A DNA stretch of 64,000 nt from Botryllus schlosseri. Its lineage: Eukaryota. The DNA lies in the NCBI GenBank assembly GCA_051294905.1, contig CM119372.1:5952001-6016000 (forward strand), written 5' to 3'. Position 1 is the first letter of the stretch. Every line of letters starts with the position of its first letter. Positions 6,019 through 63,324 of this stretch are shown here, piece after piece. Below the pieces are notes generated by a model, which was given only the letters and a program-made list of their open reading frames with translations, made no database searches and had not been told where the DNA came from. Made by a program: the position numbers and the translations under genes.

Positions 6019-6327
6019 GTTTAGATGGTGCAAGAATGATTTCATTCTCTATTTGCTACACGTATATTCACGTCATTGAAATTGGGTAAAAATACAAATC
6101 ATGTTATGAAAATTCGCATTATTTGTTTACTCTCCACACGATAAACCTCTGCCACATCTGTTTCAATTACTCTTTGTTTCCTCTTCACTTTTTTTTCGAG
6201 AAGAGCATATCCGTGTTCTAAGTTGTGCCAAATGAACTAATGAAATAGAAAATCAAGTCAGACTGAAATTTTGGCATATCTACTACTTTCAAATTTCCAT
6301 CGTATAGCCTACTTAATTTTTTCACAG

Positions 6328-9462: not shown

Positions 9463-10447
9463 GTATTAACTACGCATATAACAGTCTGTATTTCATGTTC
9501 ACACAGCTCATACACTCTGCCCAATATACTCTCATTGCCATATAGCACTACCTATCCTATGTATAAAATACATTGAAAGGTGACTGGCGATACTAAAATT
9601 GAATATGACATTCAAAAATGCAATCATAGCTGTATACTATATATTGAAAGCTTTTTAAAACAAGCATGTTTTCTATTGTTTTTAACCATGGATTGACATT
9701 GACAATTGAAAATATAGGGAAATATTAGGGATGGTGAACCTCAGAGAACCTCGGAAACAAACCCATGTGAATATTTTACATATAATATATTTTTTCACGT
9801 CATTATAACATCTTTGGTTGAGATAATTCCCCACTAAACTTTCGCCCACACACCGCATACTGCTGACAGATTGAAAGGAATTTCGGCACCAAGTGAAATG
9901 CATCTTATTTCCCTTTTCAAAAATTTCATTTCCTACGGTAGAAAAGATGGCTCGAAATATTCAGCTTTCCGTTTCTGAACCATTAGCGACTCTCTGCTGT
10001 GAGCTTGGCATGCAATGGATATTATATCAATTTATTGACATCGGCGAAACTGATATAAAGAATTCATCATTGTCTAATATAAAAAGTGTAGCGAACGAAC
10101 GGGATCCATTTTGATTTTGCATGTTTATTGTATAATATGAACCAAATCTTCTCCAGGTGTTGGCTACTGTATAACTTAATTTTGAGTTAATATCTGTAGG
10201 AAGATTATTTTCCCTTGCAAGTCTTCGTGGAAATCGAAAAAATGCAAATTTATTAGATTTTATGGAATTATTATAGCGTTTGATTGTTTCACTTGATACA
10301 TTTGGTGATGCTTAAATGACGGTGATGCTGAATGTGACGTGACGTCACATCACTTTAATGTCTTGTATACATATATTTCATTGCCATTAAATATCTAATT
10401 AGCATGGTGCTGGGACTAGTTGGAAAATATCCTTACCGTGTTTATAG

Positions 10448-10654
10448 CTATCAAATGTGGTCAACTTCCAAATTTTCCAAATGGCGAGTTTGGTGATGAG
10501 TGCTCCTCAGGTAGTGCAGTCAATACAACGTGCGTCATAACCTGTAACGATGGGTATTACCGTAATGGAAGTGACACAGCAACATGTATTGATGCCGACT
10601 TGGCGAATAATACCAATATGGATGGAGAATGGGATTATGATACCACATGTGCAC
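10448..10654 (+). CDS. Intact sushi exon (type C), upstream cluster
   Basis: TTTATAG acceptor, GTAAGT donor, 207 nt, phase 1-1, six Cys. Confidence 0.85.
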
Positions 10655-18599: not shown

Positions 18600-18663
18600 A
18601 TGGCTCTTTGGGGATGTATCATAATTGCTTCACTGCTCATATCGTGCAGTGAGTCAACGACAG
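18600..18663 (+). CDS. Signal-peptide first coding exon [21 protein letters not shown]
   Basis: ATG at 18600, hydrophobic core then small residues, phase-1 donor ACAG|GTACGT matching the phase-1 sushi exons downstream. Confidence 0.75.
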
Positions 18664-21600
18664 GTACGTTACTGTTATTAAACCGTTTCCCAAAATATAT
18701 GTTTTAGAGTCAGGTTTCAATAAATACGGATGATTTTGAAACTTCAATTGAAACTTGCTCTTGCATGGCTCTTGCATGAAATATTGTATGGCGTTGGACA
18801 GTGTCGGGTCAGGCGCAATGCTAGAAATATATGACTATTCGCTTGTTTCTGTAGTTTCCCATTTAACACCGAACGAAAATCATTAGTTAACTGATGTTAA
18901 TAGATTTTCTTCGTGATATTTTCCATTCAATATCGGCAGCCTGAACGGTCGAATCATTGTTACACAATCGTCGTTGCGTGGCCTCACGTTGCCTATTTCT
19001 ATGTCCAGTTGAGTCTTGAGCTCGAGCCTCATTCGCGATACCAGAGTGTATTACTCCCACAACTGACAACTAGCAGCTTATAAAAGAGGACCATTGTTTC
19101 GAATGTTCCAACGATTGATTTAGCTGTTAAAGTTGAGTGTATAAAAGAGAAAGTCCGTGCACCAAATGCACATCGCGGAACTTGTTGTAGAAGTAAATTC
19201 AAAATCGAGCCGTTGATCTGCTTCTGATACATCCCAAATCATCATTCCAATTTAACAGCAAACAATTCCAGAGTTAAGATTAACTTTTTACGATTGATTC
19301 AATTTTCTTCGAATCCCAATCCTGACTTTGTGTCTCCTCGCGATCAAAGATTCTATAATCACAAATCAAAATTTGCCTCTCATTGCCACTCTAAATTTGC
19401 AATTTATATTAAGTTCTATACCATAATTCCAAGTCCAAGTCGATATCTCCATGCGGAATTATGCTTTCTCTCGTTTCGTGAAGCTAGATGTGGTGCAAGT
19501 AGGCTATTATAGTTAAAGATGATACTTGAATGCAGATAAAATTATTTGACTACTATTCCGCTCAATCACAAGCAGAAATAGAGAAGCTGTCGGACTTGCT
19601 AACGCGTCGAAGAATTTTGTCAGCTGATTTCTTGTGACAGCCTTCAAGACCGAAATCTGAACTATCGCTATCAGCGCGAAATCACTGAAGAGTTTTTGTT
19701 TTATTACTCACACATGATATATGACGCGTCTAGCCTTTTCGGTTGCTTCGTCATAATTCGGATTTTTGTCTTTTGTTACGCTTTTGCGAAATGAGTAATT
19801 ACGTCCCAATTAGGTGCAATGAACGGGATGGTATCTGGACACAAAATTGAGACGCTGACAGAATGGCAGGGGGGTCAAACTTAACTTGGGTCGCGGGCCG
19901 GATTCAAAAGTTTTGATCGCTCGCGTGCCGGACCAGTCAAATGATTCCAATATGTTACCTTCAAATCTATACCCTTGTTTTTCACTGGAATGCTTTATTA
20001 TCAACGCTATATGCAAAACGGTATTATATATTATATCGCGGATCACGTGGGCTCTATTCGAGCAAACACCGTTATTCGCAAGCAATGGAATTGGCAAGCA
20101 TTCGATGATTGGCCAATTGTATGCAGATATAAACCACTAAAACAGTGGCTCTGACGACGATATAAGTTGGAATATTTCTATACTGCCGCTGTATTAATCA
20201 CAATGCCTCGTTGGAACTGGAAGAGGAAGCACTGAATATATCGACTTGAGTAACTTCAAAAAATTGACAAATTGTACTTGAGTCCTCCATAAACAGAAGT
20301 ATTTCGTTACCAAGTGTACCAGTCACACATAAATGAGCACGGTCATACGCCTACATAAACTCCATAAACTCCTGCATGCCGAAATGTGGATTCAAATCCT
20401 GTACTTGGACACGCTTTTCACCAATATTTCAAATCGAACATCCAACCTGCACTCCTTTCAGACGTGCACATTGCTCAAAATAAAGTGGCAATGCGTATTT
20501 TTTAATAAAATTCATTTTGTCACCATAAAGTTTCGTTTGATGCTTCGCGGCAATTATGTGTGTCGCGAAATGTTCAGCGTGACTCAAAATGGGTTGATAT
20601 ACATTGACCTCTCTAGGATATCAAACTATAAAGGGCAGTAAAATCTGATGAGAGGTCATAAGTTTCTTATGCGCATAAATTATAGATAGATGAATAGAGG
20701 TGGTATGTCGTTCTGCTTCTTTCGTGTTTGACGCGTCCACTCAAGCAAAACAGTGGTGAAGCACGTCACACATGCATCCCGCCTCCACCCTGCTCATATA
20801 GCTGGACCTGATACCAACACAGGTTTCACTCGCCGGTATGCCTGGATTCTGGGATACAGACGGGCAAGATCAACTCATTACTTCTGGTTTGGGGATCAGT
20901 GATATAACCACTGAGCTTCCATAAAAAATATCTATTTGGTAGTTTATGACCTTATATACCTATTACACCGGGTCAGGCCTTTGTTATATTGACTCGAATG
21001 GACATGAGTAACACGTTTCTGGTCCACAAATCCATAGCAGCTAATCACCATTTTTCGCAAATATTCACCTATATACCCACCCACACATGACGGGGATTGG
21101 AAATTCAATCACAACATCACTCTCTACTTTGAAGATCTAAAATGCACCAAAAAATGTTGAATTACAAGTGGATGATGAAGGTAACTACTTGATTAGTTCG
21201 CAAATATTAACAAATTCTTGAGTACATTCAAAAATGATACAATTATATATCGTTACCAACAATCTCTAAAGTTGAATGCGCATCTTACAAAATTCGATGT
21301 CGAAATGTGGATTCAAATCCTGCACTTAATTATACTTTCCACCAACATTCCTACTGAAATATAAGACACACTATTTACAGACATGCGCATTGCACATAAC
21401 AGATGTAGTTACCAGCAAAATAGCCTACATGTACCTGCGATTAGTCCTTGCTAGTTGGATGGATTCCGTCATTATAAAGTTTCGTTTGTTGTGTGGCGAG
21501 AATTATGCGAGTCATCAATTGTGCTGTGGCGCAAAATGGTATGATAAGCATTGTCCCAGGCCATGGCAATGCTGAGATCTCATAGAAGATATGAATTTTA

Positions 21601-24600
21601 TGGTATTTGACCGTATACCTATTAAACTGCGTCAGGAATGCTCTTTAAACTTAAAGAGCTTCTTGGAGGTACAGAACTTCAATATACAATTAAATAGTAT
21701 ATTCATATTGAAATGAACCCGAATATTTTCGGCTGACACTCGTCAGGGGTAATCGTCAGCAACTGTCACCAGGCTGGTGACGTCATATTTTGTGATACGA
21801 TTGTTGATATACGATGTTCTTTCCAATTCTCTACTAGTTGCTGACGATTACCCCTGACGAGTGTCAGCCGAAAATATTCGGGTTCATTTCTTTAAACTTA
21901 CGTCGCGGGATATAGTTGCATACATAATTACATGTATTCCATAATAGTGTACCGTACTCTCTTGCCTTGAAACCGGTGGTTATCATTATCCTGACTTTAT
22001 GCAGCTGTGACATGTACTGAAGAACCTCACTTTTCTAATGGAACTGTCGATTCACCATGCCAGTCTAACAGTATCTACGGTACCTCATGTTATATAACAT
22101 GCAACGAAGGCTATTATCTGAACGGCACTGGAAATGCAACATGTGTCGACACTAATACAACAGATCATACAAACATGGACGGGGAGTGGAACTACGGAGA
22201 CACTGCATGTATACGTAAGACGCCTTAGAGTTGTGTTTAAAACAAAAATCAATTTAAAACAAACATGTTCTTGTTTAAACCATGCTATTATTTTTTTTCC
22301 AAGCCCATGACGTCACGCATATTCAATTCTGACGTCATGCGGGATTGACATGCACAATTGAAAATATAGGGTAAATATAGCTCCTTTGACGAAATAGGCT
22401 TCCAACCCATGCCGTATACCAGGGGTCGAGAACCTTTTTCGATCGAAGAGCCATATTGGCCAAATATTTTCAATTGTCACTCCCAAAAGAGCCATTCATA
22501 TCAATCAAATGTTACGTCACAATTGAAAATTCGTGGGCTAATACATGGGCCATATTTTTCTGCCCATGTACGTAAGTGGAGCCAAACATGGTCACTACAG
22601 CAGTACATACGCACTGCAGGCTGTGATACGTCAGTGACGTGGGGTTAGGGGGATAAGTGATGCAGTGCTTCACATGTCGTGCGGGGCTAAGAGAAGGAAA
22701 ATTGTGAAACCTTCAATGATTTTTGGCATTTTCGATCGGTGTTTTGAATGATTAGATTTTGAGCATTTTTATTGCCAAAATCACAGAATTTCCATGTTTA
22801 TTGTTCGGAAATAAATCGCAAAAGAACAGGTACAGATGAGGCAGAGACGGTCCAGGCCTTATCAGTGATAGCGCAACTTATCGTAAATAGCTTAGAATTT
22901 CTAATCACTGTTATTTCTCGAATGTTATTGTCGCGTTGGTTCAGAAAATCTAAATATTGATCGACTTCTAAAGTATTCGGCGTAACATAACGTTGCGCTA
23001 CACACCTATTTTACGGTGGTGCTAGAAAGCTACTTAGCAATCAAGAACATGGATACTGGATAGCTATGGCGTTCTTTTTAAATAGAATGTGTAATTGTGA
23101 ATGTCACTTCTAAGTCAGTTTATTTCCCGGCGTTGAAAAGGAAGACAATGTGTAAGTGAAACTGCATTATCCTACAAGCGTCACCATGTCAGTTATTCTC
23201 TTTGATCAATCAAGGTATCGTGCAATCCAAGATTTCGAAGTGCACGATGGAGGGTATATCGAATTCGCGAGTGGTGTTAGTCGCCAGCGCAACAGCAACT
23301 TAAATTTGAGAATTTTGTAAAGGGGTGACGAGTCCCTAATCTTGTATGCTCCGCTGTCTTAACCTTTCCAAGACCTGTTCATGCTGCTACGAGAATAATT
23401 ATCCTGCCCACCATGAAAATTTTCTGACAAGTTTGGGCAATATCGATAAATCAAGTACATATTTGTATCGCGAGCGTTACGAAATGCGCGAATGTATCAG
23501 ATAATCATGTCAGATTAGTAAGTATCAATTAGTCCAAATGTCCGTATCTTAGTAAGATAATCTTCACAGCCATTACCTGCGGCACATCTGCGGAAGTACA
23601 GGGCGGGTACATCGCAGATGAATGTGACAGTGGAAGTCTATACGATGCTACATGCCAAGTAATCTGCTATGATAGTTATTATATCAGGGGGGATAAAGTG
23701 GTCACGTCGATATACCTCATTCAGATGATATAAACGAGAATGGGAAATGGAATCAATATAAATATAATAAAAAATATTATTTAACGTCGTCCCGCGCTTT
23801 TTGAATTCAACATACCCCCATTGATGATAGTGAAATATTTTGCACCTCCCCTATCGCCATATCGCCATACCACAAAAATATTTATAAGAGCAACCAGAAT
23901 GTTTGCAATGCCAACGCATTGTTTGTGGCATTGAAGGTGCAGTGTGACTGTCGTTGGCAAACGCGAATATTGCAATAATTTGATGACTACATTCATTGCA
24001 GTATAATTTACTTCACGCGTTTTCTTACTTATAACTAGGCCTACGCATATCTACTGGTGCAGCTGGTCTGTGCCATACTTTCCGAGTGCGTTCACCGTAC
24101 ATACCGGACATTTCATAGTTCACAGGTAATTCACTTATTGTTGACAGTACAGACGACAATCGATGCATATTACATTTCATGTTCATTAAGTTCGTGACAG
24201 GGGTTGTAAAACTACGGTACGCATATCCTAAAGTAATTTCGGGGGTACGCAAGCAATTTCATGCTATGACTAATTGGTAAATTTTCTTACTTAATTTTAG
24301 CTATGAGGTGTGGAGTAGTTCCTAATATTCCAAACGGAGAGTATAGGGAGGGATGCTCTGATAATGTGGTCAATGCAACGTGCACTATATCGTGTAACGA
24401 TGGGTATTATCGGAATGGAAGTGACACAGTTAACTGCACTGATCCCGACCTGGAGAGCAATACCAATATGGATGGAGAATGGAATTACGATACTGCATGT
24501 ATACGTAAGTTGTCTTTATATAGCGGTGTACTTCCGAGTAAAGTTCATTGTTGCAATATTTAATTAGTACACTCGTATTACTACCAACGAAAATGGGTAA

Positions 24601-27600
24601 AATACAGATCCCATTTCGTGGAAACTTATTTGGTAATTTGCATGGAACTCTCCAACATCCTTTTCCCGCTTGACTCTTCTCCTTCAGAATAGCATATCCA
24701 TATGTTCCAACTTTGCAAAATTAATTAACCAGAAAATCGTGTAAGTTCAGTAGCCTATGTAGTCTTATGGACAACTTTTTGAAATTTCGATTCTACACGA
24801 CATCAATCTTCACAGCCATTACCTGTGGGACATTTCCGGACGTACCGAACGGGTTTATAGCAATTCAATGTGACAGTGGAAGCGAATACAATGAAACATG
24901 TCAAGTAACTTGTTTTGAGGGTTACTATATTAGCGGGGAAGAAAAGATAACGTGCGTCGATGAGCCTGTGTCAGATGACACAAACCCACAAGGCGAATGG
25001 AACGACGGTAACACAACGTGTACAGGTATATTAACTATATAAGGATATGATTATATATTCACAAAGTCTATGCAACACATTCGACCTCGTGTGCATGAAC
25101 GTAAAATGACGATAGTGCACTGTAATCATACAGGTTGGAAAATTTTACAAATTATTCTAGCTATGAAGTGTGGAGTTGCTCCTTATATTCCAAAGGAGAG
25201 TATAAGGAGGTATTCCCCTCTGATTACGAGGTCAATGCAACGTGCATTGTAACTTGTAACAATTGGTAATATCGGAATGGAAGTGACACAGCAGAATGTG
25301 TTGATGCCGACCTTGAGAGCAACACCAATGTTGATGGATAATAGAATTACGATACTGCATGTATGCGAAGATTGCGAACATTGTCTTTATATAGCGGTGT
25401 ACTTCCGAGTTAAGTTCAGAAGTTACATGTAATATAGCGATATTTAATTTGCACACTCATATTAATATCAACGAAAATGGGTAAAATATCGATCATATTT
25501 CATGATAAATTATTTGTTAACTTTGATAAAACTCTCTAACATCCGTTTCATGCTTGACTCTTTCTTCTCCGTAAAAATAGCATATCTATGTTCCAACTTT
25601 GCAGAATGAACGAAATAGAAAATTGTGCAGTATAGGCCTAATTCACTTCACGCGTTTTTCTTACTTATGGCTACGCGTAGTTACTGGCACAACTGATCTG
25701 TGCCATACTTTCCCAGTGCGTTCACAGTACACACCGGACATTTCATAGTTCACAGGTAATCCACTTATTGTTGACAGTGGAGTCGACAATCGATGCATAT
25801 TACATTTCATGTTATATATCGTTACCAACAATCTCCAAAGTTGAATGCGCATCTTACAAAATTCGATGTCGAAATGTGGATTCAAATCCTGCACTTAATT
25901 ATACTTTCCACCAACGTTCCTACTGAAATATAAGACACACTATTTACAGACATGCGCATTGCACATAACAGATGTAGTTAGCAGCAAAATAGCCTACATG
26001 TACCTGCGATTAGTCCTTGCTAGTGGGATAGATTCCGTCATTATAAAGTTTCGTTTGTTGTGTGGCGAGAATTATGCGAGTCATCAATTGTGCTGTGGCG
26101 CAAAATGGTATGATAAGCATTGTCCCAGGCCATGGCAATGCTGAGATCTCATAGAAGATATGAATTTTATGGTATTTGACCGTATACCTATTAAACTGCG
26201 TCAGGAATGCTCTTTAAACTTACGTCGCGGGATATAGTTGATTATACATATATTCGATAATAGTGTACCGTACTCTCTTGCCTTGAAACCGGTGGTTATC
26301 ATTATCCTGACTTTATTCAGCTGTGACATGTACTGAAAAACCTCACTTTTCTAATGGAACTGTCGATGCACCATGCCAGTCTAGCAGTATCTACGGTACC
26401 TCATGTTATATAACATGCAACGAAGGCTATTATCTGAACGGCACTGGAAATGCAACATGTGTCGACACTAATACAACAGATCATACAAACATGGACGGGG
26501 AGTGGAACTACGGAGACACTGCATGTATACGTAAGACGCCTTAGAGTTGTGTTTATAACAAAAATCAATTTAAAACAAACATGTTCTTGTTTAAACCATG
26601 CTTTTATTTTTTTCCCAAGCCCATGACGTCACGCATATTCAATTGTGACGTCATGGGGGATTGATATGCACAATTGAAAATATAGGGTAAATATAGCTCC
26701 TTTGACGAAATAGGCTTCCAACCCACGCCATATACCAGGGGTCGAGAACCTTTTTCGATCGAAGAGCCATATTGGCCAAATATTTTCAATTGTCTCTCCC
26801 AAAAGAGCTATTCATGTCAATCAAATGTTACGTCACAATTTTTATTCGTGGGCTAATACATGAGCCATATTTTTCTGCCCATGTACGTAAGTGGAGCCAA
26901 ACATGGTCACTACAGCAGTACATACGCACTGCAGGCTGTGATACGTCAGTGACGTGGCGTTAGGGGGGGTAAGTAATACAATGCTTTTCATGTCGTGCGG
27001 GACTAAGAGAAGGAAAATTGTGAAACCTTCAATGATTTTTGGCATTTTCGATCGGTGTTATGACTGATTAGATTTTGAGCATTTTTATTGCCAAAATCAC
27101 AGAATTTCCATGTTTATTGTTCGGAAATAAATCGCAAAAGAACAGGTACAGATGAGGCAGAGACGGTCCAGGCCTCATCATTGATAGCGCAACTTATCGT
27201 AAATAGCTTAGAATTTCTAATCACTGCTATTTGTCGAATGTAATTGTCGCGTTGGTTCCGAAAATCAGAATATTGATCAACTTCTAAAGCATTCGGCGTA
27301 ACATAACGTTGCGCTACACACCTATTTTACGGTGGTGCTAGAAAGCTACTTAGCAATCAAGAACATGGATAGATATGGCGTTCTTTTTAAATAGAATGTG
27401 TAATTGTGAATGTCACTTCTAAGTCAGTTTATTTCCCGGCGTTGAAAAGGAAGACAATGTGTAAGTGAAACTGCATTATCCTACAAGCGTCGCCATGTCA
27501 GTTATTCTCTTTGATCATCAAGGTATCGTGCAATCCAAGATTTCGAGGTGCACGATGGAGGGTATATCGAATTCGCGAGTGGTGTTAGTCGCCAGCGCAA

Positions 27601-51600: not shown

Positions 51601-54600
51601 AACTTGATACATGAAATTGCCGTTTCCTTACACTAGGGTGAAAATCGGCGAAACACAAGATTTTATTATATAGTGTGTAGAGACAATCTCCAATCTACAT
51701 TTCAAATGGTATATTTTGAGTTTCGTTTCGGTTAAATAATGTACATAATGTTGCCGTCAGAGATTTCCGACTGAATTGCAACAACGGCGTTTGCATTTAT
51801 AGGCTAATATAAACATAACGATACAAGGAATAGACTTTTGGGGCGACTGTGAATGAGCCAACAAATATCCTGTATCATTGAATCGTGCTAACATACGCTA
51901 TAGTGTTCAAGGTATGGTCTGAAATCCTGTTACATGCCGTAATGACGTGGCTCTTTTGTTTGCTCGCAAATACCCATATAACGACCGTGTATCGCAGGAA
52001 TGTGAAAGTAAGTTATTTACCTTGGGTCTCTCCGTGACATTATTCGCCTGTTTACATTCGTAATCGTACGTTACACACGAGATTCCTGTACACAGTATAC
52101 TATGCATTGAAATCAGACTTCTGTACGCTTTTATCGCAGAGAAAATGCGAAAAGTACTGGCCGGAGACTTCGGAAACATTTGGACACGGTAGTATCGAGA
52201 TCATCGGTAAGGAGCAGAGTGAATGCGGGCCGATAATTGTGCGCAAATTCTCGATAAAGGACAAAAAGGCGAAAACGGTGAACATAATTGTAAACTTACG
52301 TAGATTGTGGTCAACAGCGACACCTTACGTTCAGGCGAGAGACCTTACGCAGTATCACTACGTTTCTTGGCCGGATCACGGCGTCCCCCTTACCACGTCG
52401 GACCTCTTCAACCTCAGAAGGATTGTCAACCTTGAGTGTCGCGGAAGAAATCCGATCGTGGTCCATTGCAGGTAATGATCATACCTACAGCTCCAGCGCC
52501 AATTAGTCTGAAGATTGGAAGTAACCAGAGGCAGTAGACTGAATACAATTAGAGAAAAACGTACATTGGTTTTCTGGCTCTCGGAAAGCAAGGTATACTG
52601 TATATTACATGAAACGAAAACGTATTTTCCTCTGGCCATGCATAGTTATATGTTCATGACCAGGGGTCGCCAACCTAAAACGACTCGCGGGCCACTTTTC
52701 GAATTTCGTACAGGCCGCAAGAATGCAACATCGATACAAAATAGGCCATATCATTTAGCAACTGGGGTTTCAAAACTTAACGTCAGTACAACACTGTTCT
52801 CTGTAATATTGGAGACGGCATAGTTACCACAGAAGAAATAATATTTTACTAAAGAAATACGAACCCGAAAAAAGTATCATGATAATTACTTTTGATTTGA
52901 ACTATGAGCTTCGCACCATACCTGTAAACGCCTTTAAGCGACTGAAGAATCGATAGTTGGGAAAGCGAGACACGCTACTAGGTGAAAGACTATCTCCCCT
53001 CAATGCCTGATCTTGTGGAGAACCGTAAGACGTTTTCTAGGCGTCTTGGTCTTTGCAGTGTAAATTTCAGCATTTCACCAAAATTTTCTTCCAACATTTC
53101 AAATCTGATCGCGGGTCGGGACTCTGTTATTGACCATTACCATAAGAGAGGTGGCAGTAACGAAGTACTACTCTTCTACAGTGCCAAGTATGTTTTGCCT
53201 ATCTTTACTATACTTACTCGATCGAGAGGGTACGTTTTTTGACGACTTCGACTTCTACTTAACAGTACGTTTCGGTAAAACGACTTAGGGGAGACCGGGG
53301 ACAATTGTAACACTTTTCGTATTTTCCAACATTACGTGTTTTGCTCGTGGAAATTTCACTTCCAAAGTTTTATATAAAGAAGCCAACAACTCGATAGTTG
53401 ATATGAAAACTAAATTGGAACTCAATCAACAATCAATCATGGAAATTTTGGGTCGCAAAAATCGCTGCTCAAATGTTACAATCGCCCCGTACCCAGGGGC
53501 AATTGTACCACCCTTGCGGGGCAATTGTAACAGTGTTATTTATAACTAAACACAAACTAAATGAACAACGAAAACGGAAGCACAAATTGTAATATTGCAT
53601 GGAACTAAAGGAAGATACGTTTGAACGCTTCCAGGCTACGCCCCATCGCATTTATGGCCTCTGAATGCAATATCACCCTTCGTGTCTTGTTCAAGCTTAA
53701 ATTGTACAAGAGACACATTCATTCCATCATCTCCCTACACATATTCGGCCTCTTCTACCAAGGTTCTGTTGTTCAGCGGGCATAATGGCTTGGTCATTCG
53801 GCTACCTGCGAAGGTGCGAAACCGACCTGGCTAACATATCTTGGTTGAATGGGCCGATGATAGTATAGTAAAACGAGGACGCAACATTGTCTGGCGTCAA
53901 AGCTATAATGATATTTATCTGTGCTGTAGGAAATTAACATAAATTGTTCACATCAAATATCAAAATGTAAGTGGGCCATGATCAAAGTCAGAGGACGAGA
54001 ATTAAGCCATGACTATGGAAGTTCGACACACCAAAAGTCGATCAACATGAGAAAGCGTGGTTGAATCACGAAAATAACCGAACCGTCAGATTCACATCAC
54101 CACTATTGTATGGCCGTTTCGACAGATGATCATGTTAGAATTGGTATCGCCAGGCAGTATGTGTTATGGTGAACCTCTGGCTGTTGCAAGATTATTCTGC
54201 AGTAGATGAATGGTAATACCAACATATGAACAAAGACATTCAGAATTGATAACATATTGTAACGAGGCAAAAGTAACAGAGTGTTACGATTGCCCCTGAC
54301 ACGCTCGACCATGATTAGTGTCTCAGTATGGTACCTTCCCGGCGATGCAAGTCCTATTCTTTCCATCACCACGGTAGACTATAGTAACATTGTTCCAGCT
54401 ACACATATTACGTTGTAACTACTTGAGGTACCATTCGTTTAGACAAATTATTCCAGACCAGAAAAACTTTACTCGAGGGTCAAAAATTTCGTTTTTTGCA
54501 AATTATTCCGGGGTTTCGCATCGTAGCTCAACGTAACTCCAGGTATAATAGGAGAGATAACTACTGCATGCGCACTTGAAATATCAAGCTGATTTCTCCA

Positions 54601-57600
54601 TCCTACTAGCGATGAGGTCGATTGTTACATTTGCCCCTAGTTACATTTGTCCCCGGTCTCCCCTACTAGTTACACTTTGGATTTTGCGACGAATAAATAT
54701 GTTTTGGGATTTGCTTACATCACTTTTACGAGTGAAATTGTCATAACAACTGCAAAAATTAGCCCCCTGCAACTGATTAAATTAATATAGTTTCGAAAAT
54801 CGCAACTTTAAGTGCATAGGGCCTCTATCGTTGATTACTTCGGGAAGTTGCGTCTGTGACTTCGGAAGTGACCATATCTGTAATTCACTGCTAAAATTAT
54901 GCGACCGCCAAACCAAATGTACCTTTTGAAACTAATTACTTCAATACTTTTGAGATGTTCATTTCATTAATTCTACTTGTAGTAGTTTTGACATGTCTTT
55001 GCAATCACTGCGTCTATACTTGAATATCAACGCTGAATACATTCACGACCTCTTCTCTAATACCCTTAAGTGTTAACCTATTTCGGATGGATAAATTGTT
55101 TCTACTGTGTAGTGTGTATTACCGTTAATACCTCGTCCTGTGTCTTTTAGCGCCGGAGTGGGAAGAACGGGAACATTTATCTCCTTGGATTATAACCTAG
55201 ACGATTTGGCTACTACATCAACGGTCGATATCACATCTCAAATGTGGGCCATGAGGGAGCGAAGAACAGAAATGATTCAGACCTCGGTATGTTACACTTG
55301 GAAACGTTTGATTCCGAGGCGCGGAGCTCACGCACTCGATTTACGTTTCCAGGACCAATTCATCTTAGTTCACAAAATGATTTTGGAGCGACATCTGATG
55401 GGAGAGACGGACATTGATGTTGCGAGGTTGGAAGAATTGATGTCCAATAACGGGTAAGACTGTGGTACCAAACGTTGGCGGAGTTATAAACCGGTTCAGG
55501 GGTCTAGGAGTACGGCATGAGGTGTATATGTTCGGAGGGGGTTCTTGGAAAGAATCGAATCTGAGTCAAGTCAAAAAAAAAATATCATCACACTAAATCA
55601 CTTCGATTCCGAAAGACTATAACGGTGGTTTTTAATCTGTACTAACCTGCGGAACTCCAAATATTCACTGAGTCATACATAACAACACCACAATACACAT
55701 ATAAATATTAAACGCACATCTATTACTGCACATTACTATAAATTACCGATGCAGAAAATGAATTGTGCATCAATATAGTGCTAAAAGAACAAAACCATTA
55801 TAGTATGATTGTCACACAAAACGAAAACATTATAATGGATATTTATTGCAAATACCAGTTCGGAAATTCTAGGCTTCTCCTTGGAAAGTGGCATTGTATT
55901 GTTCGGTCGAAATGCGACATCGTGACAACAATGGCTTAATTACAAATGAGTTTGTGGATACTGGAAATAAAGTTGGCATTTCAAAATGGTCGGGGATTCG
56001 ATATCGAACCCAACCTTCCCTGAGTACGACATTGCACAAGACGCACCGCATCAAAAGTTACATTTCGACTACGGATCAGGCCTAATTACATGCAAACAAT
56101 TATGGCCTGGACGGGTGTTTATCATCAAAAATCATATGCATGAGTTGAGTTTGTGTCTTAACCTCGCCAGGTAACCCCTGAGATTGTTTCAGGGTATCCC
56201 TAGTGTTTAATGGAATACCGCAGTTCAGAACCTCTGCTGTATAACTTAGAGATCTGACTAACTTTGCAAGTTATAGGGGAAAACACTATGTTGATTCGTA
56301 ACGAACTTCTACACTGTGAATGGTGTATAACTTATAACTTATGTGCTATTTGTACAGACCTTAACACCTCTACACTTCGATCATTCACAAGCATAATATA
56401 GGTATATCTAGTAGGGATGGTGAGAAAAGTAACCTTGGTAGGTTCTGCCCGTGACCGTTTTTCATCAATATAAGAAGTTTACATTAATATGTTCATGTGT
56501 ATGTACATTGTACAATGTACAATAAAGTTCATTTTAACGTTGGCGTTCACAGTCAACCTTTCATAAAATTCCAGGTTCGTTTTAGGGGTTAACATCATCC
56601 CTACTTATAATAGCTGATCTAGATTTATAGCACTATTTCATAGGCATTGCAATCAACAGCTCCATCGTCCGCAATACAAAACACATCACCCAGGCAGTTA
56701 TGGATTTGTATTCTTGGTCAATTTGCACTAATTACTAACGTTACAATCGACCAGGTTATCCGACGATCATCTGGAAACCGAATTCGAAAAAATCAGCAAA
56801 GTAAAACCGACCGAAACGGACCAGGACATTAGCTCTCGGTTCTACCACTTGAATCGCGATCCTTCAGTCATACCATGTAATAACTGCGTTTTCTTTGCTC
56901 GCGTCTGTTTCGTAGCCTATAATCCCGTGCCTGTCTTCCCGCAACAGATGACCGGAACATTGCAGCCATACGAATGCGCCCCGAGGACCACACCGCGCCA
57001 TATTTGAACGCTTCTTTTATTCCGGTAGGTGAAAATTCAAACGAATCATATCGAAATGAAGCGGAATATTGTCGGCCGACTCTTGTGTGAAGTAATCGTC
57101 AGCAACTATACTAGACAATTTATGTGGTAGTGGAACCCTGAAATATTTATTTCGATATGAATATATTATTCAATTGTATTTTCAAGTTCCGTACCTCCAA
57201 GAGTCTCTTTAAGTTTCGTGATTCGTCGAAAATGAAGAAGTATAAAGGGACTTTCACCGTCAGGATTTTCAATTGCTTTAAATAGCCATATAGCACATGC
57301 CAAAAATAACAAAAAAAGCTTATTTTTGGCATTTTTCAGATTTTATTTTTGGCGATTTTGGCATCGCCATGAAATCATATTTAGAGACTCGAATTAACCA
57401 TGTGAAACGCTTCAGTTGCGTCTTTCTTATGATTCCGAAATCACAACAAATGAAGTATCCACACTGTGCGATCAAACGGTAAGCTTTAAATCCGAATTGA
57501 AAACGATGTATTGGAGACCAAATTTACCCGATACAATGCAGTATTCTTAATACTCACTATGCGTGCAAAATCACCGGCATTCACACAGGTCACAAAACTT

Positions 57601-60600
57601 ATGATAACAAGTCAAAAGAGTTACTGACACGTACACGTTTGGATTGCAGCCTTCGCTACCCAACCTTTGTTTAGAAATCATGAGTGGCTTTAATTGATAT
57701 TGGTCAGAGTGAAAAACAGGTTTCTATTCCATACGTGCTACAAATATCACCTCATAAAGAAGTTATACGGTAGCCACCATCCCAATCGGACAAATTTGTT
57801 TATATGATACAATAAACATCAAATCAAGGTGGATCCCACCCGTCTTCTAGATTTTCCACATTATAGAACGATGTATAGGGATGGTGAGAACCTCAGAAAG
57901 GTTCAGGTTCGTGTGAACGATAACCTTTTCGAAAGTGAACCTCGTGACGTCACGTGACGTCATATTGCTAATTCCAACCCTACATTTCAGTGAAGTGATA
58001 GCCTATATTAATGCAATAAATTTCGACCAAATATGTTTTAATGAAGTGAAAATTGTAATATATGAAAAAGGTTCACAGTGCAGTGCACAGGTTCGTCTGT
58101 GAACGTGAACCTCTAACTTTCTGAGGTTTACACACAGAACGCGAACGTGAACCTCACGTTCACACCATCCCTAAAACGCTACATTGGTTATATCAATTTC
58201 ATTGATGTCAAAAATTGATTGACAATTCGCTAACAAGCTATACAACATATACATGTTATTTGTTCTGTTGTTGATGATGTGTGATTGCGGACCAAGCTCA
58301 CAGCAGAGAGTTACTAAATATTCACAAACGGAAAGCCGAGTATTTCGGGCAAACTTTTCGAACATAGCGAAGTGATTTTCGAAATTGACAACATGCTGGT
58401 TTGGATACGGCCGAATTTATTTTCCTGCTGCCAGGGTCACGGAAAGGGTGGTCCGAAGTTGAAATGCAAATAATTTCAACCAAACATATTATAATGACGT
58501 GAAAAAATGTAATATAACAAAAGGGCTCATAGTGCAGAACCTACCAAGGTTCATTTGAGAACGCGAACCTCCAAATTTATGAGGTTCACACGCCCAGCGC
58601 GAACGTGAACGTCATCTTCACGCCATCCGTATATAAGACTCGTAAACGTCACCCCAAGTCTTACAGAAATTGCTCTGAAATTTGAGTTCATTTGCAATCA
58701 CAGTCCGCACGCACACGGACGATCTCGCATCTTATGAGCGAATATAACATAGCCGGTACTATTGCACGGCTTCCATGTTTTTCCTAATTTTAAACCAGGG
58801 ATACAGCAAAGAAGACAAGTTCATAGTGACACAGGACCCTTTACCAGACACCGAAGAATTATTTTGGAGAATGGCATTGGATAACAATGTTTCGTGTGTC
58901 GTCATGATTCGGAAACGTGGCGAATCGCAGGTATGGCGGAACTCTCCGTGCTAATTTCATCACAGATGCCGGCATGATATTTTCTATTAAATCTTAAGCA
59001 TTGAGTCCATCATAATTCTCCATTTCTGCGCGGTTTCGCGAGTGTCATCTTTGGGCTGAGAACCTCTGTGGTCTTGTAACGCATACCACGTCCAATAGCA
59101 TCAGGCTGTAGTCGGGTTATATAGTTCGTAATGTGATGGTATTTGTATCATGTGATTCTTGAGGCTGCGAAAGCGATATGCTCTCGATCAATTGATATAA
59201 GTGGTAGATATATCCACCGTCACTTGGTGACATTTTATTTCCATGATTATGACACAACACCTAAACTTGTAATATCATTCGTGTTTATATCGTTGCGCTC
59301 GAACTTGCGAAAGTATCTTAAAAGTAAATTAAGCATACGAGCTGTGCCATGGTATTTGTGTAAAGATATTATTTAAGATGGGTGAACTAGTATGATAGAT
59401 TGCTAGTAGCCTACGTGTAACTATTCGTATAAGCGAATCCTGAATGAATTTAGCATAGTTTTGTGATATGAATCCAACCTTCAAATCGTACATATCATAA
59501 GCGTAGCTGTGACTTCTCTAACGTCTGACCATTACGATGTCGCTCTGTAAGAATGCTATACGATAACTGTCAAGCAGCTATATTTTTGTGATTCTGATCC
59601 GTTGCAACTACAAAATTACAGCCAGCCTTTCATTGCCGCGTTAACAAGAATAGGTAATGATATTAATTGCCTAGGACATTTCGGCCAAGTACTGGGCCGA
59701 CCGGCAATCAGTCGAATTCGGGAAAGTGACCGTGTCCGTGCTGGAGACGTTCATGGAGAGGAATTTCACCCAAAGGAAAATATTTCTGCGGGAAGTCGTT
59801 CTCACGGTATGTAATCCAAATTTTTCCGTTCAGTTCTATTCCGCATGTAGGCCTACAGTACATATATAACTAACAATGAAATAAACATCTGTCTTATTGG
59901 CAATGAGCCTTATACATGCTGAATCACATTCATCAATTCACCTAACATTACGGTAAATATCATTACGGTGAATCCCTTACTTCATTACATGCCCGCTATC
60001 TAAATAAGCAAATAGAAACAGGTTTCAAAGAGAAAGTACTTTGGATGATACCTCAAGGACTGTAACCACTGTCACAAGATCTTTGTGGGGGTATTTCGGG
60101 TTTCTTGTTTAAACTACTGTTGCTACATACAGTTTGTATTCGCTCCTCGGCAATAAACGAATATTCTGCAAAGAGTCACATAAACCACCGTGTATTCAGT
60201 TGTGCATCAATGCCCCATCCATCGATTCTGTGTATATATAGTCAGAAAGGGTCCAATATTGTTATTACCTCTGCCTCTACACTCTCCCATCACTGCGAAC
60301 AACAAACTATCCGTCGCATCATACTTACATGACACGTCATAATACAATATAACAAGCAGGATCCGCTCAACACTTGCATCATGTTACTCAGTATGTTATA
60401 GCAAACATTTAATAGCACGGAGGAATTTTGTTATCACCTGGTACCAATGCATACGATAGGGTATCAATAACTCCAATCATCTAATGAATTCCTCTGCGAG
60501 AAACTAATCGAGTTATTAGGTTACAGTCGAATAGCTTTGTGTGTACGGCCGCTCGTACAAGCATGTGATATAGCTAATTAGTTTCTTACGCAGAAGAGAG

Positions 60601-63324
60601 AGTATAAGCATTTTTTATAGCGGCGTATCAACCGATTCTGCCTATAACGTGAATCGTTATTAAATGCGTGAATAGTGAACAGTTGGAATGGTGAGTGCAA
60701 AGTCTCTGTAAGCATCTGCGTCACGTTCGTGTTTGGTAGTGTCAAGTTGGGTGTCTGATCTCAAAAACCAGGCTACTCCGAGTCGTTTCGACACCTTCCT
60801 ATCTTTTATTGTATTTCAATCTTGTGGTATATTGATCGGATAATATTGCTTTGTTTTGAAATAGGCCTGGCTGTGTTCCAGTAATCATAACATCTACGAT
60901 CGAATCGAAACTCTTCGCGGTCAACAACCGTGTCGTGATGCCAGTAAACAAAATTCAACACAGAGCTTAGAGGACATAATAGTGACATAATAAATTATGT
61001 CGAGAATTTGGAATGAAGCTTGGGATATCATTCTATTTTATTTGTTAAATAAAATGTTCCACTTCCTTCGTTGACCTATAGGCAGATATGGTCAAAAGTA
61101 GTCATCAATGGTAATCAGCACAAGCTAAATAACGCCGTAAATGTGTATTACGTACTACGAAAGAGTGGGAGTAATTCGATAATGATCACCTCTGCCTCTG
61201 TAGGTAACGTATGTTGACAATATTACCATAGTGTCCTATATGGTGTCGAGTGTCGACACAGCCAAATGTCACGCCTCAGTGAAATTGTATCACGTGACAA
61301 TTTCCATTTGGCTACAGGCAATTTCAATCGAAAGCTGACTCTGCACTGATTACAAAAATATTAATTTTATTCCGCTCGTGGCCCTGGAGCTCCCAGCACA
61401 ATCAGCCTCGAATTTTTCATTGTTATGGAGATTGGCATTGGGACGCAACAATGCTGTCTGGCGAAACGAGAGAGTAGCTCAAGAGAAAAAGAGCCAGACA
61501 GCATTGTTCAGCATTGTTGCGTCCCAATGCCAATCTCGATAACAATGAAAAATTCGAGGGTGATTGTGGGAGTTCCAGGGCCACGAGCGGAATAAAATTT
61601 ATACTTTTGTAATCAGTGCTGAGTCAGCTTTCGATTGATACCCGTTTTACCAAATTTAATGCTCGGCAAGCCGGTCAAAAATGACCGTCAAATTGCCTGT
61701 AGCCAAATGGAAATTGTGACTTAAATCAATTTCACTGAGGCGTGAGATTGGCTTGTGTCGGTGTCGACACCACCGTTCCCGTTCAGTTATCTAGTGCTAT
61801 CTAGTGTCTGATGAGAAGGATATGATATGTCCGCTTGGCATAGACATTGTGAATTCATAAGCACGTGTTCGTGTTCACGTTCACACCAGTAATGACTGAT
61901 GATGAGCATTATTCGGCTTCAGATAGGATTAGGACGGGATTTTGCACACCTTTGCGTCACTCGGTTCGGATACGCATTCTATGTAATCTTTTGTCTCGTA
62001 TATCTTCGGATAGCTGTAACCAGAATTTAGTTTCGATTACTAACCAGAAGAAGAAAATCATCATATAGACTAGCAAAATAAACCGTAGAAACCGTGTTTA
62101 GGGACTGGTATCATTCCAAAACCATTCTCTCAAGGGTAAAACCCAATGTAAATCAGCTAATCGATTGCAAAGGCTATTTCGTAACTATATCTCAAATATC
62201 ATTATCCACTCTACACTTGGTTCGCACTAATCAGAACCTTTGCGGGCTTTCCATCACACCTATAGTAACTAGAAAATATCGTCCATGAAATGCTGTTCTG
62301 ATGTTATTCTGCTGTGTGCAGTCCGCTCGCTCCAGCAACATTACTCACTTCGAATTCACCGAATGGCCCGAGAATCCAGCCCAAGGAGCTGATCCATTAC
62401 TAGAACTGATAGGCCGCGTGCAGAAAGAGAGAGCTGCTGCAGACGCCGGACACGGGCCTGTCATCGTGCATTGCGGGTGAGAGCGTCGCTTTAACGCTTC
62501 TTTAAATCAGACCGAGGCTTACGGCATCGCGTAACGTGTTCAGGAACGGATCGGAGTACGTTGGGGCGTTGTGCGCCATCGCGAACATCGTGGAGCGTAT
62601 CAAGAACGAGAGTCGGGTCGATGTGGTGCGGGCTGTCAAAGACCTGCGCGACATGAGGCCGCAGATGGTTTACAGTTTGGTAAGGCTATATCAGTGGTTC
62701 TTAACCTGGGGCTCTAGCGCCTCCATGTGGCGATTTGGATGTTGGAGTCACGAAAACGCCAAGCGGGCGGTAGGGGGGCGCTGAAGAAAAATGACGTCGC
62801 TGTGTCGGACATATGAATAATGATTATATAGTAGAAGAATAGTTCTATGTTTACAGCGTGTTTCAATGAATGCAGTGGTTTATTATAATTCATGTAAAAT
62901 TGATTTGGCGTACTTGTAGATCGGCATTTCCCCGTTAAAACACTCCCGTCACACTAGCTCGGGTTAGTTTCCAAGAAATGTATCGAACTAGGTATTGTAT
63001 CCAGCAGCGCACATCATGTCGTAATCGAACAGGCAAGAGAGAAGATCTCCACCACATCCTCATTTGATTTACTAATCACACAAAGCAATAAAATAAAACC
63101 CAATACAAATATAGTTATAAAAACCCGAAATTGTAAACCTGCATTTTACTTTGTAACGTAGGCTACTGCGTCTTTATTTCTCAAAATAATGTTTCTCAAG
63201 CATCTACGTATGATACGTATGACTCAGACAATTTTGCGTATTGTTTCAGGACGAATACAAAGTCTGCTATGCGGCCGTAAGGTCCTACTTGGACACTTTT
63301 AACACCTATGCGAATTTCCAATAA
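18600..63324 (+). CDS. Multi-exon receptor-type protein tyrosine phosphatase (SP-sushi x7-Ig x3-CTLD-FN3-TM-PTP D1-PTP D2), 36 exons, about 1,950 aa
   Basis: Exons joined by hand with GT-AG sites and matching phases; summed length 5844 nt is divisible by 3. PTP motifs [49 protein letters not shown]. One junction (47717/47770) is non-canonical. Confidence 0.88.
21714..21758 (-). ncRNA. Inverted identical copy of the hammerhead motif
   Basis: Exact reverse complement of 21842-21886. Confidence 0.65.
21842..21886 (+). ncRNA. Minimal type-I hammerhead ribozyme motif
   Basis: ACCC-CUGACGA-G(7 nt)C-GAAA-AUAU-UC-GGGU: full core, 1-bp stem II, palindromic stem III AAUAUU, stem I ACCC/GGGU; predicted cleavage after C21879. 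Confidence 0.65.
22005..22214 (+). CDS. Sushi exon 1 of the RPTP (type A)
   Basis: AG/GT boundaries, 210 nt, open frame VTCTEEPHF...[10 protein letters not shown]. Confidence 0.88.
23570..23760 (+). pseudogene. Sushi pseudo-exon (type B')
   Basis: Acceptor intact; 4-nt deletion (acgtcgat versus acgtgcgtcgat) causes frameshift and stop; no donor. Confidence 0.85.
24301..24504 (+). CDS. Sushi exon 2 (type D)
   Basis: TTTTAG/GTAAGT, 204 nt, phase 1-1, six Cys. Confidence 0.88.
24816..25025 (+). CDS. Sushi exon 3 (type B)
   Basis: CACAG/GT, 210 nt, open frame ITCGTFPDV...[11 protein letters not shown]. Confidence 0.88.
25161..25366 (+). pseudogene. Sushi pseudo-exon (type D')
   Basis: Copy of the 24301 exon with frameshifts, W codon changed to TAG, donor decayed (gtaag to gaag). 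Confidence 0.85.
26321..26530 (+). CDS. Sushi exon 4 (type A; near-identical to 22005)
   Basis: AG/GT, 210 nt, open frame; only a few amino-acid differences from the 22005 exon. Confidence 0.88.
27878..28068 (+). pseudogene. Sushi pseudo-exon (type B')
   Basis: Same 4-nt deletion as 23570 plus tgc caa changed to tcc taa (Cys loss and stop). Confidence 0.85.
28601..28804 (+). CDS. Sushi exon 5 (type D)
   Basis: TTTTAG/GTGAGT, 204 nt, open, six Cys. Confidence 0.88.
29233..29442 (+). CDS. Sushi exon 6 (type B)
   Basis: CACAG/GT, 210 nt, open frame [12 protein letters not shown]...[11 protein letters not shown]. Confidence 0.88.
29647..29853 (+). CDS. Sushi exon 7 (type C)
   Basis: TTATAG/GTAAGT, 207 nt, open, six Cys. 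Confidence 0.88.
29956..30258 (+). repeat. Two-copy tandem repeat, unit about 150 bp
   Basis: atgcggata...gggaaagggtaatttgctttgcaaag...tatattgatcgaa occurs twice. Confidence 0.8.
30350..31215 (-). mobile_element. hAT remnant with transposase C-terminal fragment (family of 36299-37011)
   Basis: LRCCQPTTA...[15 protein letters not shown]...NVRKY on the minus strand; reverse-complement similarity to 36300-37000; ends approximate. Confidence 0.7.
32349..32619 (+). mobile_element. Full-length tRNA-derived SINE
   Basis: A box tagcgcagcgg, B box ggttcgagtcc, (AAAC)n tail, 17-bp TSD aacaagtctaaccgccg. Confidence 0.88.
33010..34909 (+). mobile_element. Second SINE copy, split by a hAT insertion
   Basis: Head at 33010-33127; body and tail at 34737-34909 match 32349-32619. 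Confidence 0.85.
33128..34736. mobile_element. hAT element with internal tandem repeats of about 330 bp
   Basis: Termini cagcaccgtaac / gttacggccctg; exact TSD cctatagg; repeat units at about 33700-34500. Confidence 0.85.
35600..35712 (+). pseudogene. Highly decayed sushi exon relic
   Basis: [20 protein letters not shown] aligns by eye with [20 protein letters not shown] of exon 10448; boundaries approximate. Confidence 0.55.
36299..37011 (+). mobile_element. Non-autonomous hAT with transposase tail
   Basis: TAGGGCG...CGCCCTA; TSD gtcattat/gtcattac; [17 protein letters not shown] motif (frameshifted) at about 36570-36680. Confidence 0.82.
37266..37659. mobile_element. hAT (Charlie-like) MITE
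   Basis: TIR cagtggttcc; exact TSD atatagaa. Confidence 0.88.
37748..38080 (+). CDS. Ig-like domain 1 exon (no canonical cysteines)
   Basis: 333 nt, phase 1-1; [16 protein letters not shown] Ig E-F strand motif. Confidence 0.8.
38146..38448 (+). CDS. Ig-like domain 2 exon (I-set-like)
   Basis: 303 nt, phase 1-1; [14 protein letters not shown]...DNGTYVC. Confidence 0.88.
39246..39557 (+). CDS. Ig-like domain 3 exon
   Basis: 312 nt, phase 1-1; [16 protein letters not shown]...[11 protein letters not shown]. Confidence 0.85.
39628..40032 (+). CDS. C-type lectin-like domain, two exons (39628-39789, 39850-40032)
   Basis: A..AC....HLV.I, YIGA, WTW, C...W..VDC...RYVC pattern; 60-nt intron. Confidence 0.85.
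40401..41720 (-). mobile_element. Truncated inverted copy of the 42142-44591 family
   Basis: Begins caggggtctcaagcac; internal reverse-complement similarity to 42142-44591 and 44923-46182; far end not found. Confidence 0.7.
42142..44591 (+). mobile_element. hAT (Charlie/MER45-like) element containing a nested hAT
   Basis: TIR cagaggtctcaaac; exact TSD cactagtc. Confidence 0.9.
43061..43957. mobile_element. Ac-like hAT MITE (TAGGGATGGTG ends), nested
   Basis: TIR tagggatggtgtgaac; exact TSD ctactacc; gtgaac(c/g) subterminal repeats. Confidence 0.9.
44923..46182 (+). mobile_element. hAT element of the 42142 family
   Basis: cagaggtc...gacctctg; TSD gtctaact/gtctaatt. Confidence 0.85.
46212..47383 (+). 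CDS. FN3-type domains, exons 46212-46441, 46500-46685, 47185-47383
   Basis: PTDV...VSW...YRV...ANTEYQIE and P..VRDV...LSW...PNSRYNASI patterns; phases 1-0-0-1 consistent. Confidence 0.8.
47444..48047 (+). CDS. Membrane-proximal FN3-like domain, exons 47444-47552, 47628-about 47717, 47770-48047
   Basis: NGIISCIFV, FTIG and LKPNKFY motifs typical of the RPTP membrane-proximal domain; RKKR site; middle donor unresolved. Confidence 0.7.
48107..48188 (+). CDS. Transmembrane exon
   Basis: [21 protein letters not shown] followed by basic KKR; AG/GT and phases fit. Confidence 0.88.
48454..48703. mobile_element. hAT-like MITE with gactcga repeats
   Basis: cagcgctg...cagccctg; flanks cggcgtat/cgacgtac; related fragments at about 16230-16290 and 31270-31352. 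Confidence 0.65.
48976..49251 (+). CDS. Juxtamembrane and wedge exons (48976-49043, 49103-49251)
   Basis: Open frames with canonical sites; contains IYDEP and LLRDEF. Confidence 0.8.
50708..55453 (+). CDS. PTP domain D1: exons 50708-50798, 50854-50927, 50985-51119, 52140-52277, 52335-52471, 55151-55286, 55353-55453
   Basis: All classical PTP motifs in order; catalytic [13 protein letters not shown] loop and Q-loop intact. Confidence 0.93.
53288..54663. mobile_element. Tc1/mariner-pogo-like non-autonomous element
   Basis: 24-bp TIR ggggagaccggggacaa(t/a)tgtaac; TA TSD. Confidence 0.85.
56412..56603. mobile_element. Short TAGGGATG-family MITE
   Basis: tagggatggtg...catcatcccta termini; no TSD match. 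Confidence 0.6.
56755..63324 (+). CDS. PTP domain D2 (degenerate) and C-terminal tail: exons 56755-56876, 56948-57024, 58799-58930, 59675-59806, 62322-62476, 62544-62679, 63250-63324
   Basis: LETEF, YLNASF, FIVTQDP, KYW, WPE, HCGNGSEYVG, RPQMV; ends [10 protein letters not shown] then TAA. Confidence 0.9.
57876..58173. mobile_element. TAGGGATG-family MITE, inverted relative to 43061-43957
   Basis: tagggatggtg...caccatcccta; reverse-complement similarity to both ends of 43061-43957; another end fragment at about 58540-58630. Confidence 0.7.
61241..61772. repeat. Foldback element with long inverted arms
   Basis: Arms (about 61241-61460 and 61490-61772, with an asymmetric insert) are reverse complements; no TSD seen. 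Confidence 0.8.

Follow-up and report, generated by a model that had tools for sequence, protein, structure and literature searches.

A predicted receptor tyrosine phosphatase of Botryllus schlosseri with sushi, Ig-like and lectin modules, and its ascidian-only clade

Does an array of sushi exons in Botryllus schlosseri belong to the same gene as the tandem protein tyrosine phosphatase (PTP) exons that follow it on the same strand, and if so, is the resulting receptor a new kind of molecule? The window analysed here, meaning the whole stretch of 64,000 nucleotides from contig CM119372.1 (positions 5,952,001 to 6,016,000), is eukaryotic DNA with a G+C content of about 40%, over the entire length of which ARAGORN and Rfam (at the gathering threshold) returned no matches. 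A preliminary description, made from the sequence alone, had proposed a single receptor phosphatase in which sushi repeats, Ig-like domains, a C-type lectin domain and fibronectin-III (FN3) domains precede a transmembrane helix and two PTP domains. It had suggested a lineage-specific inhibitory immune, adhesion or allorecognition receptor, without confirming that the architecture is undescribed.

The gene model and its domains

Using splice consensus and reading phase, an exon chain was derived independently of the preliminary model and later adjusted by alignment to homologues; some borders of the FN3 and juxtamembrane exons were set by homology and consensus alone. The chain occupies positions 18600-63324 of the + strand, beginning at the ATG at 18600 (context ACCATGG) and stopping at 63322-63324. 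All of its introns are GT-AG, many of them 55-75 nt long and a few 2-8 kb, and the coding sequence of 5808 nt specifies 1935 aa with no internal stop. The in-frame chain claimed earlier, from signal peptide to tandem PTP domains, was thus recovered, down to identical junctions at 29853/37748 and 40032/46212, with a count of 35 exons rather than 36. The exons of the model are as follows.

18600-18663, + strand: exon 1, signal peptide, phase-1 donor GTACGT; the sole strong leader-like first exon with a phase-1 donor on this strand
22005-22214, + strand: sushi exon 1 (type A), phase 1-1, six Cys; Pfam Sushi 2.6e-5
24301-24504, + strand: sushi exon 2 (type C), phase 1-1; Pfam Sushi 1.5e-7
24816-25025, + strand: sushi exon 3 (type B), phase 1-1; Pfam Sushi 3.6e-6
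26321-26530, + strand: sushi exon 4, young duplicate of exon 1 (3 of 210 nt differ)
28601-28804, + strand: sushi exon 5, young duplicate of exon 2 (3 of 204 nt differ)
29233-29442, + strand: sushi exon 6, older duplicate of exon 3 (20 of 210 nt differ, 15 non-synonymous and 5 synonymous)
29647-29853, + strand: sushi exon 7, phase-1 donor C|GTAAGT, followed by a 7894-nt intron; Pfam Sushi 9.7e-7
37748-38080, + strand: Ig-like exon 1, no Cys, Y-E-F in place of Y-x-C
38146-38448, + strand: Ig exon 2; Pfam Ig_3 2.4e-9, I-set 4.3e-6
39246-39557, + strand: Ig exon 3; Pfam Ig_3 3.2e-5, below the cut-off
39628-40032, + strand: C-type lectin-like domain in two exons (39628-39789, 39850-40032); Pfam Lectin_C 1.3e-4
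46212-47383, + strand: fibronectin-III region (exons 46212-46441, 46500-46685, 47185-47383); Pfam fn3 1e-4
47444-48047, + strand: membrane-proximal domain (exons 47444-47552, 47628-47744, 47809-48047), motifs NGIISCIF and SSCD
48107-48188, + strand: transmembrane exon
49059-49251, + strand: juxtamembrane exon
50708-55453, + strand: first phosphatase domain, D1 (exons 50708-50798, 50854-50927, 50985-51119, 52140-52277, 52335-52471, 55151-55286, 55353-55453)
56755-63324, + strand: second phosphatase domain, D2 (exons 56755-56876, 56948-57024, 58799-58930, 59675-59806, 62322-62476, 62544-62679, 63250-63324)

Read in this order, the protein would consist of a signal peptide, seven sushi modules, three Ig-like domains, a C-type lectin domain, an FN3/membrane-proximal region, one transmembrane (TM) helix, D1 and D2, with an ectodomain of about 1255 aa carrying 47 N-glycosylation sequons. 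The classical layout of a receptor PTP is present, with a leader, a single TM helix and two Y_phosphatase domains on the cytoplasmic side. We put the probability at about 0.68 that the chain is one gene for a type I receptor protein tyrosine phosphatase of about 1935 aa with a mosaic ectodomain. The Pfam domains and the D1-D2 alignments agree with the preliminary description in this respect; the database evidence for the gene itself comes from queries with single exons or from homologues.

The phosphatase half is the clearest part. Pfam matched Y_phosphatase on four D1 and two D2 exons, with a best value of 1.1e-19 in D1, and the spliced cytoplasmic part aligned over about 600 aa with tandem-domain receptor phosphatases (E about 1e-126). 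All catalytic motifs are retained in D1, namely the HC(X5)R P-loop, the WPD loop and the Q loop (QTSDQF), while the phosphotyrosine-recognition motif KNRY reads LNRF, a change of Tyr to Phe. The D2 P-loop is VHCGNGSEYVG, in which Tyr replaces the catalytic Arg; WPE stands in place of WPD, and the domain ends in TFNTYANFQ before the stop. In this family D1 is expected to carry the activity and D2 to be regulatory and non-catalytic. By its residues D1 has everything needed for phosphotyrosine hydrolysis and should be active, and D2 is most readily read as a regulatory pseudo-phosphatase.

The ectodomain modules are of uneven strength. All seven intact sushi exons, queried singly, scored above the gathering threshold of PF00084 (E 1.5e-7 to 2.6e-5), and each is 204-210 nt long, of phase 1-1, with six cysteines and a conserved (E/Q)W(N/D) motif. 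As for the three Ig domains described before, the second is firm (Ig_3 2.4e-9) and the third weak (3.2e-5, under the cut-off); the first stands at the level of the fold only. Pfam found no significant match for that exon (V-set 0.06). Its AlphaFold model is a seven-strand sandwich of low confidence (pLDDT 58), for which the best Foldseek matches are Ig-like with E values of 6e-3 or worse, so that an Ig-like fold is loosely supported by the model. On a genomic contig from Logan, an exon 60% identical to this one adjoins an Ig exon.

The lectin domain spans 115 aa with four cysteines, and its second exon reached 23.1 bits against a Lectin_C cut-off of 22.6. It lacks an EPN or QPD motif and has WKVVD at the WND position, which makes classical Ca-dependent sugar binding improbable. 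The fn3 match is sub-threshold (22.9 bits against a cut-off of 25), but the region from fn3 to the TM helix is collinear with homologues from Styela and Clavelina. The membrane-proximal alignment with these ascidian relatives contains conserved cysteines and the motifs NG(P)ISCIF, LGD..S.CD and TT..NG.

The sushi array and the extent of the gene

The seven sushi exons are of three sequence types arranged in two cassettes. Positions 21243-24715 recur at 25812-29014 with 96-99% identity, and part of the array derives from a recent tandem duplication of 4.3-4.6 kb. Sushi exon pairs 1/4 and 2/5 diverge by 1.4-1.5%, compared with about 3% mismatches over the entire duplicated block. The older change between exons 3 and 6 looks about neutral, without a clear sign of purifying selection, and the counts are too small to tell relaxed from diversifying selection. 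Three degenerate sushi pseudo-exons are interspersed among the intact ones:

23533-23756, + strand: frameshifted degenerate sushi pseudo-exon, with similar remnants at 25142-25380 and 27859-28020

About 235 nt at 21654-21888 are present in one copy of the young duplication and absent from the other. The alignments on either side of it share 12 nt of the second copy (26211-26222), which points to a recent insertion accompanied by a target-site duplication.

Whether this array is joined to the phosphatase depends on two long introns. The Ig-lectin-FN3-TM-PTP part can be taken as secure from its sequence, because introns of 58-75 nt link the exons within blocks and because Styela and Clavelina proteins show the blocks in collinear order, starting where the lectin domain ends and continuing to the C-terminus. 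Within this part, the 6.2-kb junction 40032/46212 has a weak donor (CAG|GTGCCT, score 1.1); it is nonetheless supported, because Ig, Lectin_C, fn3 and two PTP domains occur together in Styela LOC120335592. Read-through of the donor (40033-40061) adds nine codons, GALAVAVVG, before a stop. If the donor were left unused, intron retention would yield a secreted sushi-Ig-lectin protein without the phosphatase.

The 7.9-kb junction between the last sushi exon and the first Ig exon is the more consequential one. The first Ig exon has a phase-1 acceptor and neither a start codon nor a leader of its own. When the whole + strand was scanned for a Met-initiated hydrophobic leader with a phase-1 donor, only the exon at 18600 and one poor candidate at 35971 emerged. 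Pfam searches of the open frames inside the long introns revealed no further domain exons, the only match being a sub-threshold one to the hAT dimerisation domain. A member of the same phosphatase clade in Clavelina lepadiformis, CAK8678005, is modelled as Sushi-EGF-Ig-fn3 followed by two PTP domains. Because the Ig exon is leaderless, 18600 is the only good leader, the intron is free of domains and Clavelina offers a precedent, we join the two exons across this gap and regard a single gene for the sushi array and the Ig-to-PTP exons as likely. The phases match across the junction, although phase compatibility by itself is weak evidence.

The same gap could instead separate two neighbouring genes: one for a sushi-repeat protein, secreted or anchored in the membrane, with 18600-29853 and a last exon not seen here, and one for an Ig-lectin-FN3 receptor phosphatase that starts within the 7.9 kb. 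The length of the gap and its wealth of transposon remnants would fit such a boundary, and no linking transcript connects 29853 to 37748. Among the protein-library matches there was no transcript or spliced protein from the same species (the best D1-exon match was 48% identical); a word-seeded search with the first Ig exon for a transcript fragment spanning the sushi/Ig junction gave a single genomic fragment only. A weak leader-like exon at 35971-36085 and a weak hydrophobic terminal exon candidate at 32019 could serve as the missing ends, but the start context of the former is poor and its leader atypical, and the latter has a weak acceptor, which leaves 18600 as the sole good leader. All exons across the junction share phase 1, the Clavelina protein places N-terminal sushi before Ig-FN3-PTP, and a transcript-length Logan contig fuses a sushi array to tandem PTP domains in one open reading frame (ORF). 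We therefore hold two genes to be unlikely.

The 5' end of the gene is uncertain, because further sushi exons precede the signal exon, two intact and two broken:

211-462, + strand: intact sushi exon upstream of the signal exon
10423-10671, + strand: intact sushi exon upstream of the signal exon
4863-5085, + strand: broken sushi exon upstream of the signal exon
6312-6479 with 9390-9482, + strand: broken sushi exon upstream of the signal exon

The last of these looks like one exon that has been split, its halves lying about 2.9 kb apart. Thus the gene may start before the window does, or the leader exon may be preceded by the end of a neighbouring sushi gene. In the former case 211-462 and 10423-10671 would also be coding, the 18600 exon would be an alternative or internal first exon, and the array would exceed seven modules. 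The upstream exons are on the strand of the gene and match the downstream cassettes at 70-81% identity, the two intact ones are phase-compatible, and the window itself begins within a sushi array. Two of the four upstream copies, however, are broken, about 8 kb of repeats and transposon debris lie before exon 1, and both the start context and the donor of the 18600 exon are good, so that an upstream start seems rather improbable to us. It is more doubtful still that the array is mostly decaying and that the mRNA skips most or all sushi exons, leaving an essentially Ig-lectin-FN3-PTP receptor: the three pseudo-exons, the roughly neutral ratio between exons 3 and 6, the youth of the newest copies (too recent for their intactness to be informative) and the in-frame skipping open to any sushi exon would allow it, but all seven exons keep an open frame, six cysteines and GT-AG borders next to pseudo-exons that have clearly decayed, and pairs 1/4 and 2/5 differ by less than the block around them.

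The non-coding parts of the locus are rich in repeats. Between the upstream sushi exons and exon 1, positions 12786-13671 form a low-complexity tandem stretch with ...RLELELE... and ...SNSNSNLIWKK... frames on the two strands, and an open frame at 14956-15291 resembles the C-terminal part of hAT/ZBED-type transposases (…MSLKMHYLHFHLDF…). Inside the 7.9-kb intron, 30446-30985 and 36377-36916 are inverted copies with 78% identity. The sub-threshold hAT dimerisation match lies in the open frame 36522-36695, and a minus-strand frame of 223 aa at 30687-31355 has a tail similar to it; the repeats of this intron are probably decayed hAT-type transposons. In the 6.2-kb intron between lectin and FN3 exons, 40401-46178 consists almost entirely of mutual direct and inverted repeats (74-85% identity), in a nested or palindromic block.

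A fast-evolving ascidian clade

For the single receptor gene favoured here, relatives were sought through the phosphatase domains. In a HMMER search of 1.8 billion representative proteins, the D1 exon had no close orthologue; its best match was a PTP fragment of 108 aa with 48% identity, which, to judge by its old UniParc identifier, may be from Styela plicata. Other top matches came from Ciona, Styela, a mite, a tick and an amphioxus protein. The spliced cytoplasmic part aligned over its full length with tandem receptor phosphatases at 33-38% identity, proteins of Styela clava and Clavelina lepadiformis ranking first. When the Ig-lectin-FN3 part of Styela LOC120335592 was the query, only generic Ig proteins, Dscam and IgSF10 among them, came back.

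A maximum likelihood tree of D1-D2 (LG+C20 PMSF; 36 rows, with few vertebrate subtypes and no PTPRC) placed the gene in a clade of 10 sequences, all of them ascidian (with Styela, Clavelina and Ciona), with support of 100/99. This accords with the suggestion that the receptor is lineage-specific. The clade is separate both from the LAR clade, in which Nematostella, Patiria, fish, oyster and Lingula sequences fall, and from a PTPRE-related clade. Because the branch of the gene is long (1.36 changes per site), its exact place within the ascidian clade is unsure.

The relatives in Styela and Clavelina, all of them automatic models, resemble the gene in several respects. Five of them (Styela LOC120335592, LOC120336018, LOC120336019 and LOC120336894, and Clavelina LOC143445616) have an ectodomain collinear with it from the lectin domain to the TM helix, in which Pfam finds Ig, EGF, Lectin_C and fn3 domains, and clade members from the two genera are 35-38% identical to it over about 600 aa. 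A C-terminal ...Y(G/A)NFQ tail is common to the gene and a Styela PTP69D-like protein. In the gene as in its ascidian relatives D2 departs from the canonical P-loop; the Arg is lost in the gene and one Clavelina member and kept in the Styela members.

The N-terminal halves differ more. Pfam layouts within the clade include three Lectin_C domains with Ig, Lectin_C-Ig, Ig-fn3, Ig-EGF-Lectin_C-Ig-Lectin_C-fn3 and Sushi-EGF-Ig-fn3. None of the clade members retrieved pairs a sushi array with a lectin domain as the gene does, and seven N-terminal sushi modules were seen in this gene alone among roughly 390 proteins retrieved. Because the numbers of Styela LOC120336018 and LOC120336019, and of Clavelina LOC143445616 to LOC143445619, are consecutive on one chromosome, tandem arrays of clade members are suggested in both species. 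From these predicted proteins, the clade appears as a fast-evolving, ascidian-only group in which the FN3/membrane-proximal-TM-D1-D2 body is constant and the N-terminal modules vary. No study of its members was found in the literature searched.

These N-terminal module sets may have arisen through exon shuffling. The twelve exons from the first sushi exon to the second lectin exon are all of phase 1-1; therefore any one of them could be skipped in frame, and length isoforms like those of CD45 are possible from the exon phases. As a surface receptor, the protein might bind a protein or glycan partner through its large glycosylated ectodomain, or be sorted by size at contacts. Either process would, in the manner of other receptor phosphatases, control where D1 dephosphorylates phosphotyrosine substrates near the membrane. 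That the receptor acts in immunity or allorecognition is a guess by analogy with the types of modules. It is a long shot that the sushi cassettes, which are still duplicating and decaying, give rise to ectodomain isoforms of a phosphatase-coupled recognition receptor, or to variants of it that differ in copy number from one individual to another, in a CD45-like or allorecognition-type use evolved independently in tunicates.

At this locus tandem duplication of exons, and probably exon shuffling, continues to remodel the extracellular side of a signalling enzyme in the invertebrate lineage closest to the vertebrates. Should transcripts bear the model out, ascidians would own a whole unstudied clade of receptor phosphatases built with modules of immune type (sushi, lectin and Ig), of which this gene is one uncharacterised paralogue among several. 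Such a clade would bear on how phosphotyrosine signalling met cell-surface recognition before adaptive immunity.

Comparison with known receptors

The preliminary description implied that sushi modules on a receptor phosphatase are unusual. The databases argue otherwise, as sushi together with tandem PTP domains is already predicted in the ascidians Ciona intestinalis (XP_018667440.1), Styela clava, Phallusia mammillata and Clavelina lepadiformis, in three Branchiostoma species, in the sponge Halichondria panicea and in the frog Hyperolius riggenbachi. The amphioxus receptor phosphatases have the layout MAM-Sushi-EGF-fn3 and the sponge protein Ig-Sushi, and the frog protein is a 'PTPRK-like' one with sushi. 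Among about 390 retrieved proteins none carried a sushi array and a C-type lectin domain on one phosphatase. The exact module set of the gene was likewise absent from that collection. The gene is thus a new variant within a group of phosphatases known from databases only, and not a new kind of receptor. We found no paper describing sushi-bearing receptor phosphatases; a paper on Botryllus allorecognition refers to CD45-like phosphatases only in passing (PMC12582321).

Another set of sushi-rich ascidian phosphatases forms a separate family. The Logan contig mentioned above (P0013, 5825 nt) encodes in its one ORF a WxxW domain, a ricin domain, 14 sushi modules and two PTP domains, and has orthologues with 52-61% identity in Styela (LOC120339059), Phallusia ('RPTP alpha'), Clavelina (LOC143458809) and Ciona (XP_018667440.1, automatically named 'sushi, von Willebrand factor type A, EGF and pentraxin domain-containing protein 1-like'). 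In these proteins a long sushi array sits directly on the tandem PTP domains, and the arrays align with that of the gene at 24-27% identity, with E values down to 1e-33. They differ from it in lineage, since they group with PTPRE in the tree, and in their WxxW and ricin lectin heads; matches to Ig, C-type lectin or fn3 were not found in them.

The vertebrate R2A phosphatases (LAR, PTPRS and PTPRD) share with the gene three Ig-like domains, FN3, one TM helix and tandem D1-D2, and LAR-type Ig domains gave weak blast matches to its second Ig domain. The gene nevertheless falls outside the LAR clade, has a lectin domain between Ig and FN3 and sushi modules in front, and lacks the Arg of D2. In a search of solved structures, PTPRE and PTPRA were the best matches for a D1 exon and a D2 exon, with CD45 lower. 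The R4 phosphatases (PTPRA and PTPRE) have short ectodomains, unlike the ectodomain of about 1255 aa with folded modules found here, which sets the gene apart from R4. CD45 combines a large ectodomain, heavily N-glycosylated and with N-terminal exons whose skipping preserves the frame, with a D2 whose P-loop is defective. The gene resembles it in these features, but CD45 has no sushi, Ig or lectin modules.

Outside the phosphatases, selectins and regulators of complement activation are likewise type I membrane proteins built with C-type lectin and/or sushi (CCP) modules. In selectins the order from the N-terminus is lectin-EGF-sushi, with a short non-enzymatic tail, whereas in the gene the sushi modules come first and the lectin domain follows the Ig domains. 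Compared with this set of proteins, the lectin domain of the gene is without the EPN/QPD and WND motifs, and its sushi modules have six cysteines rather than four.
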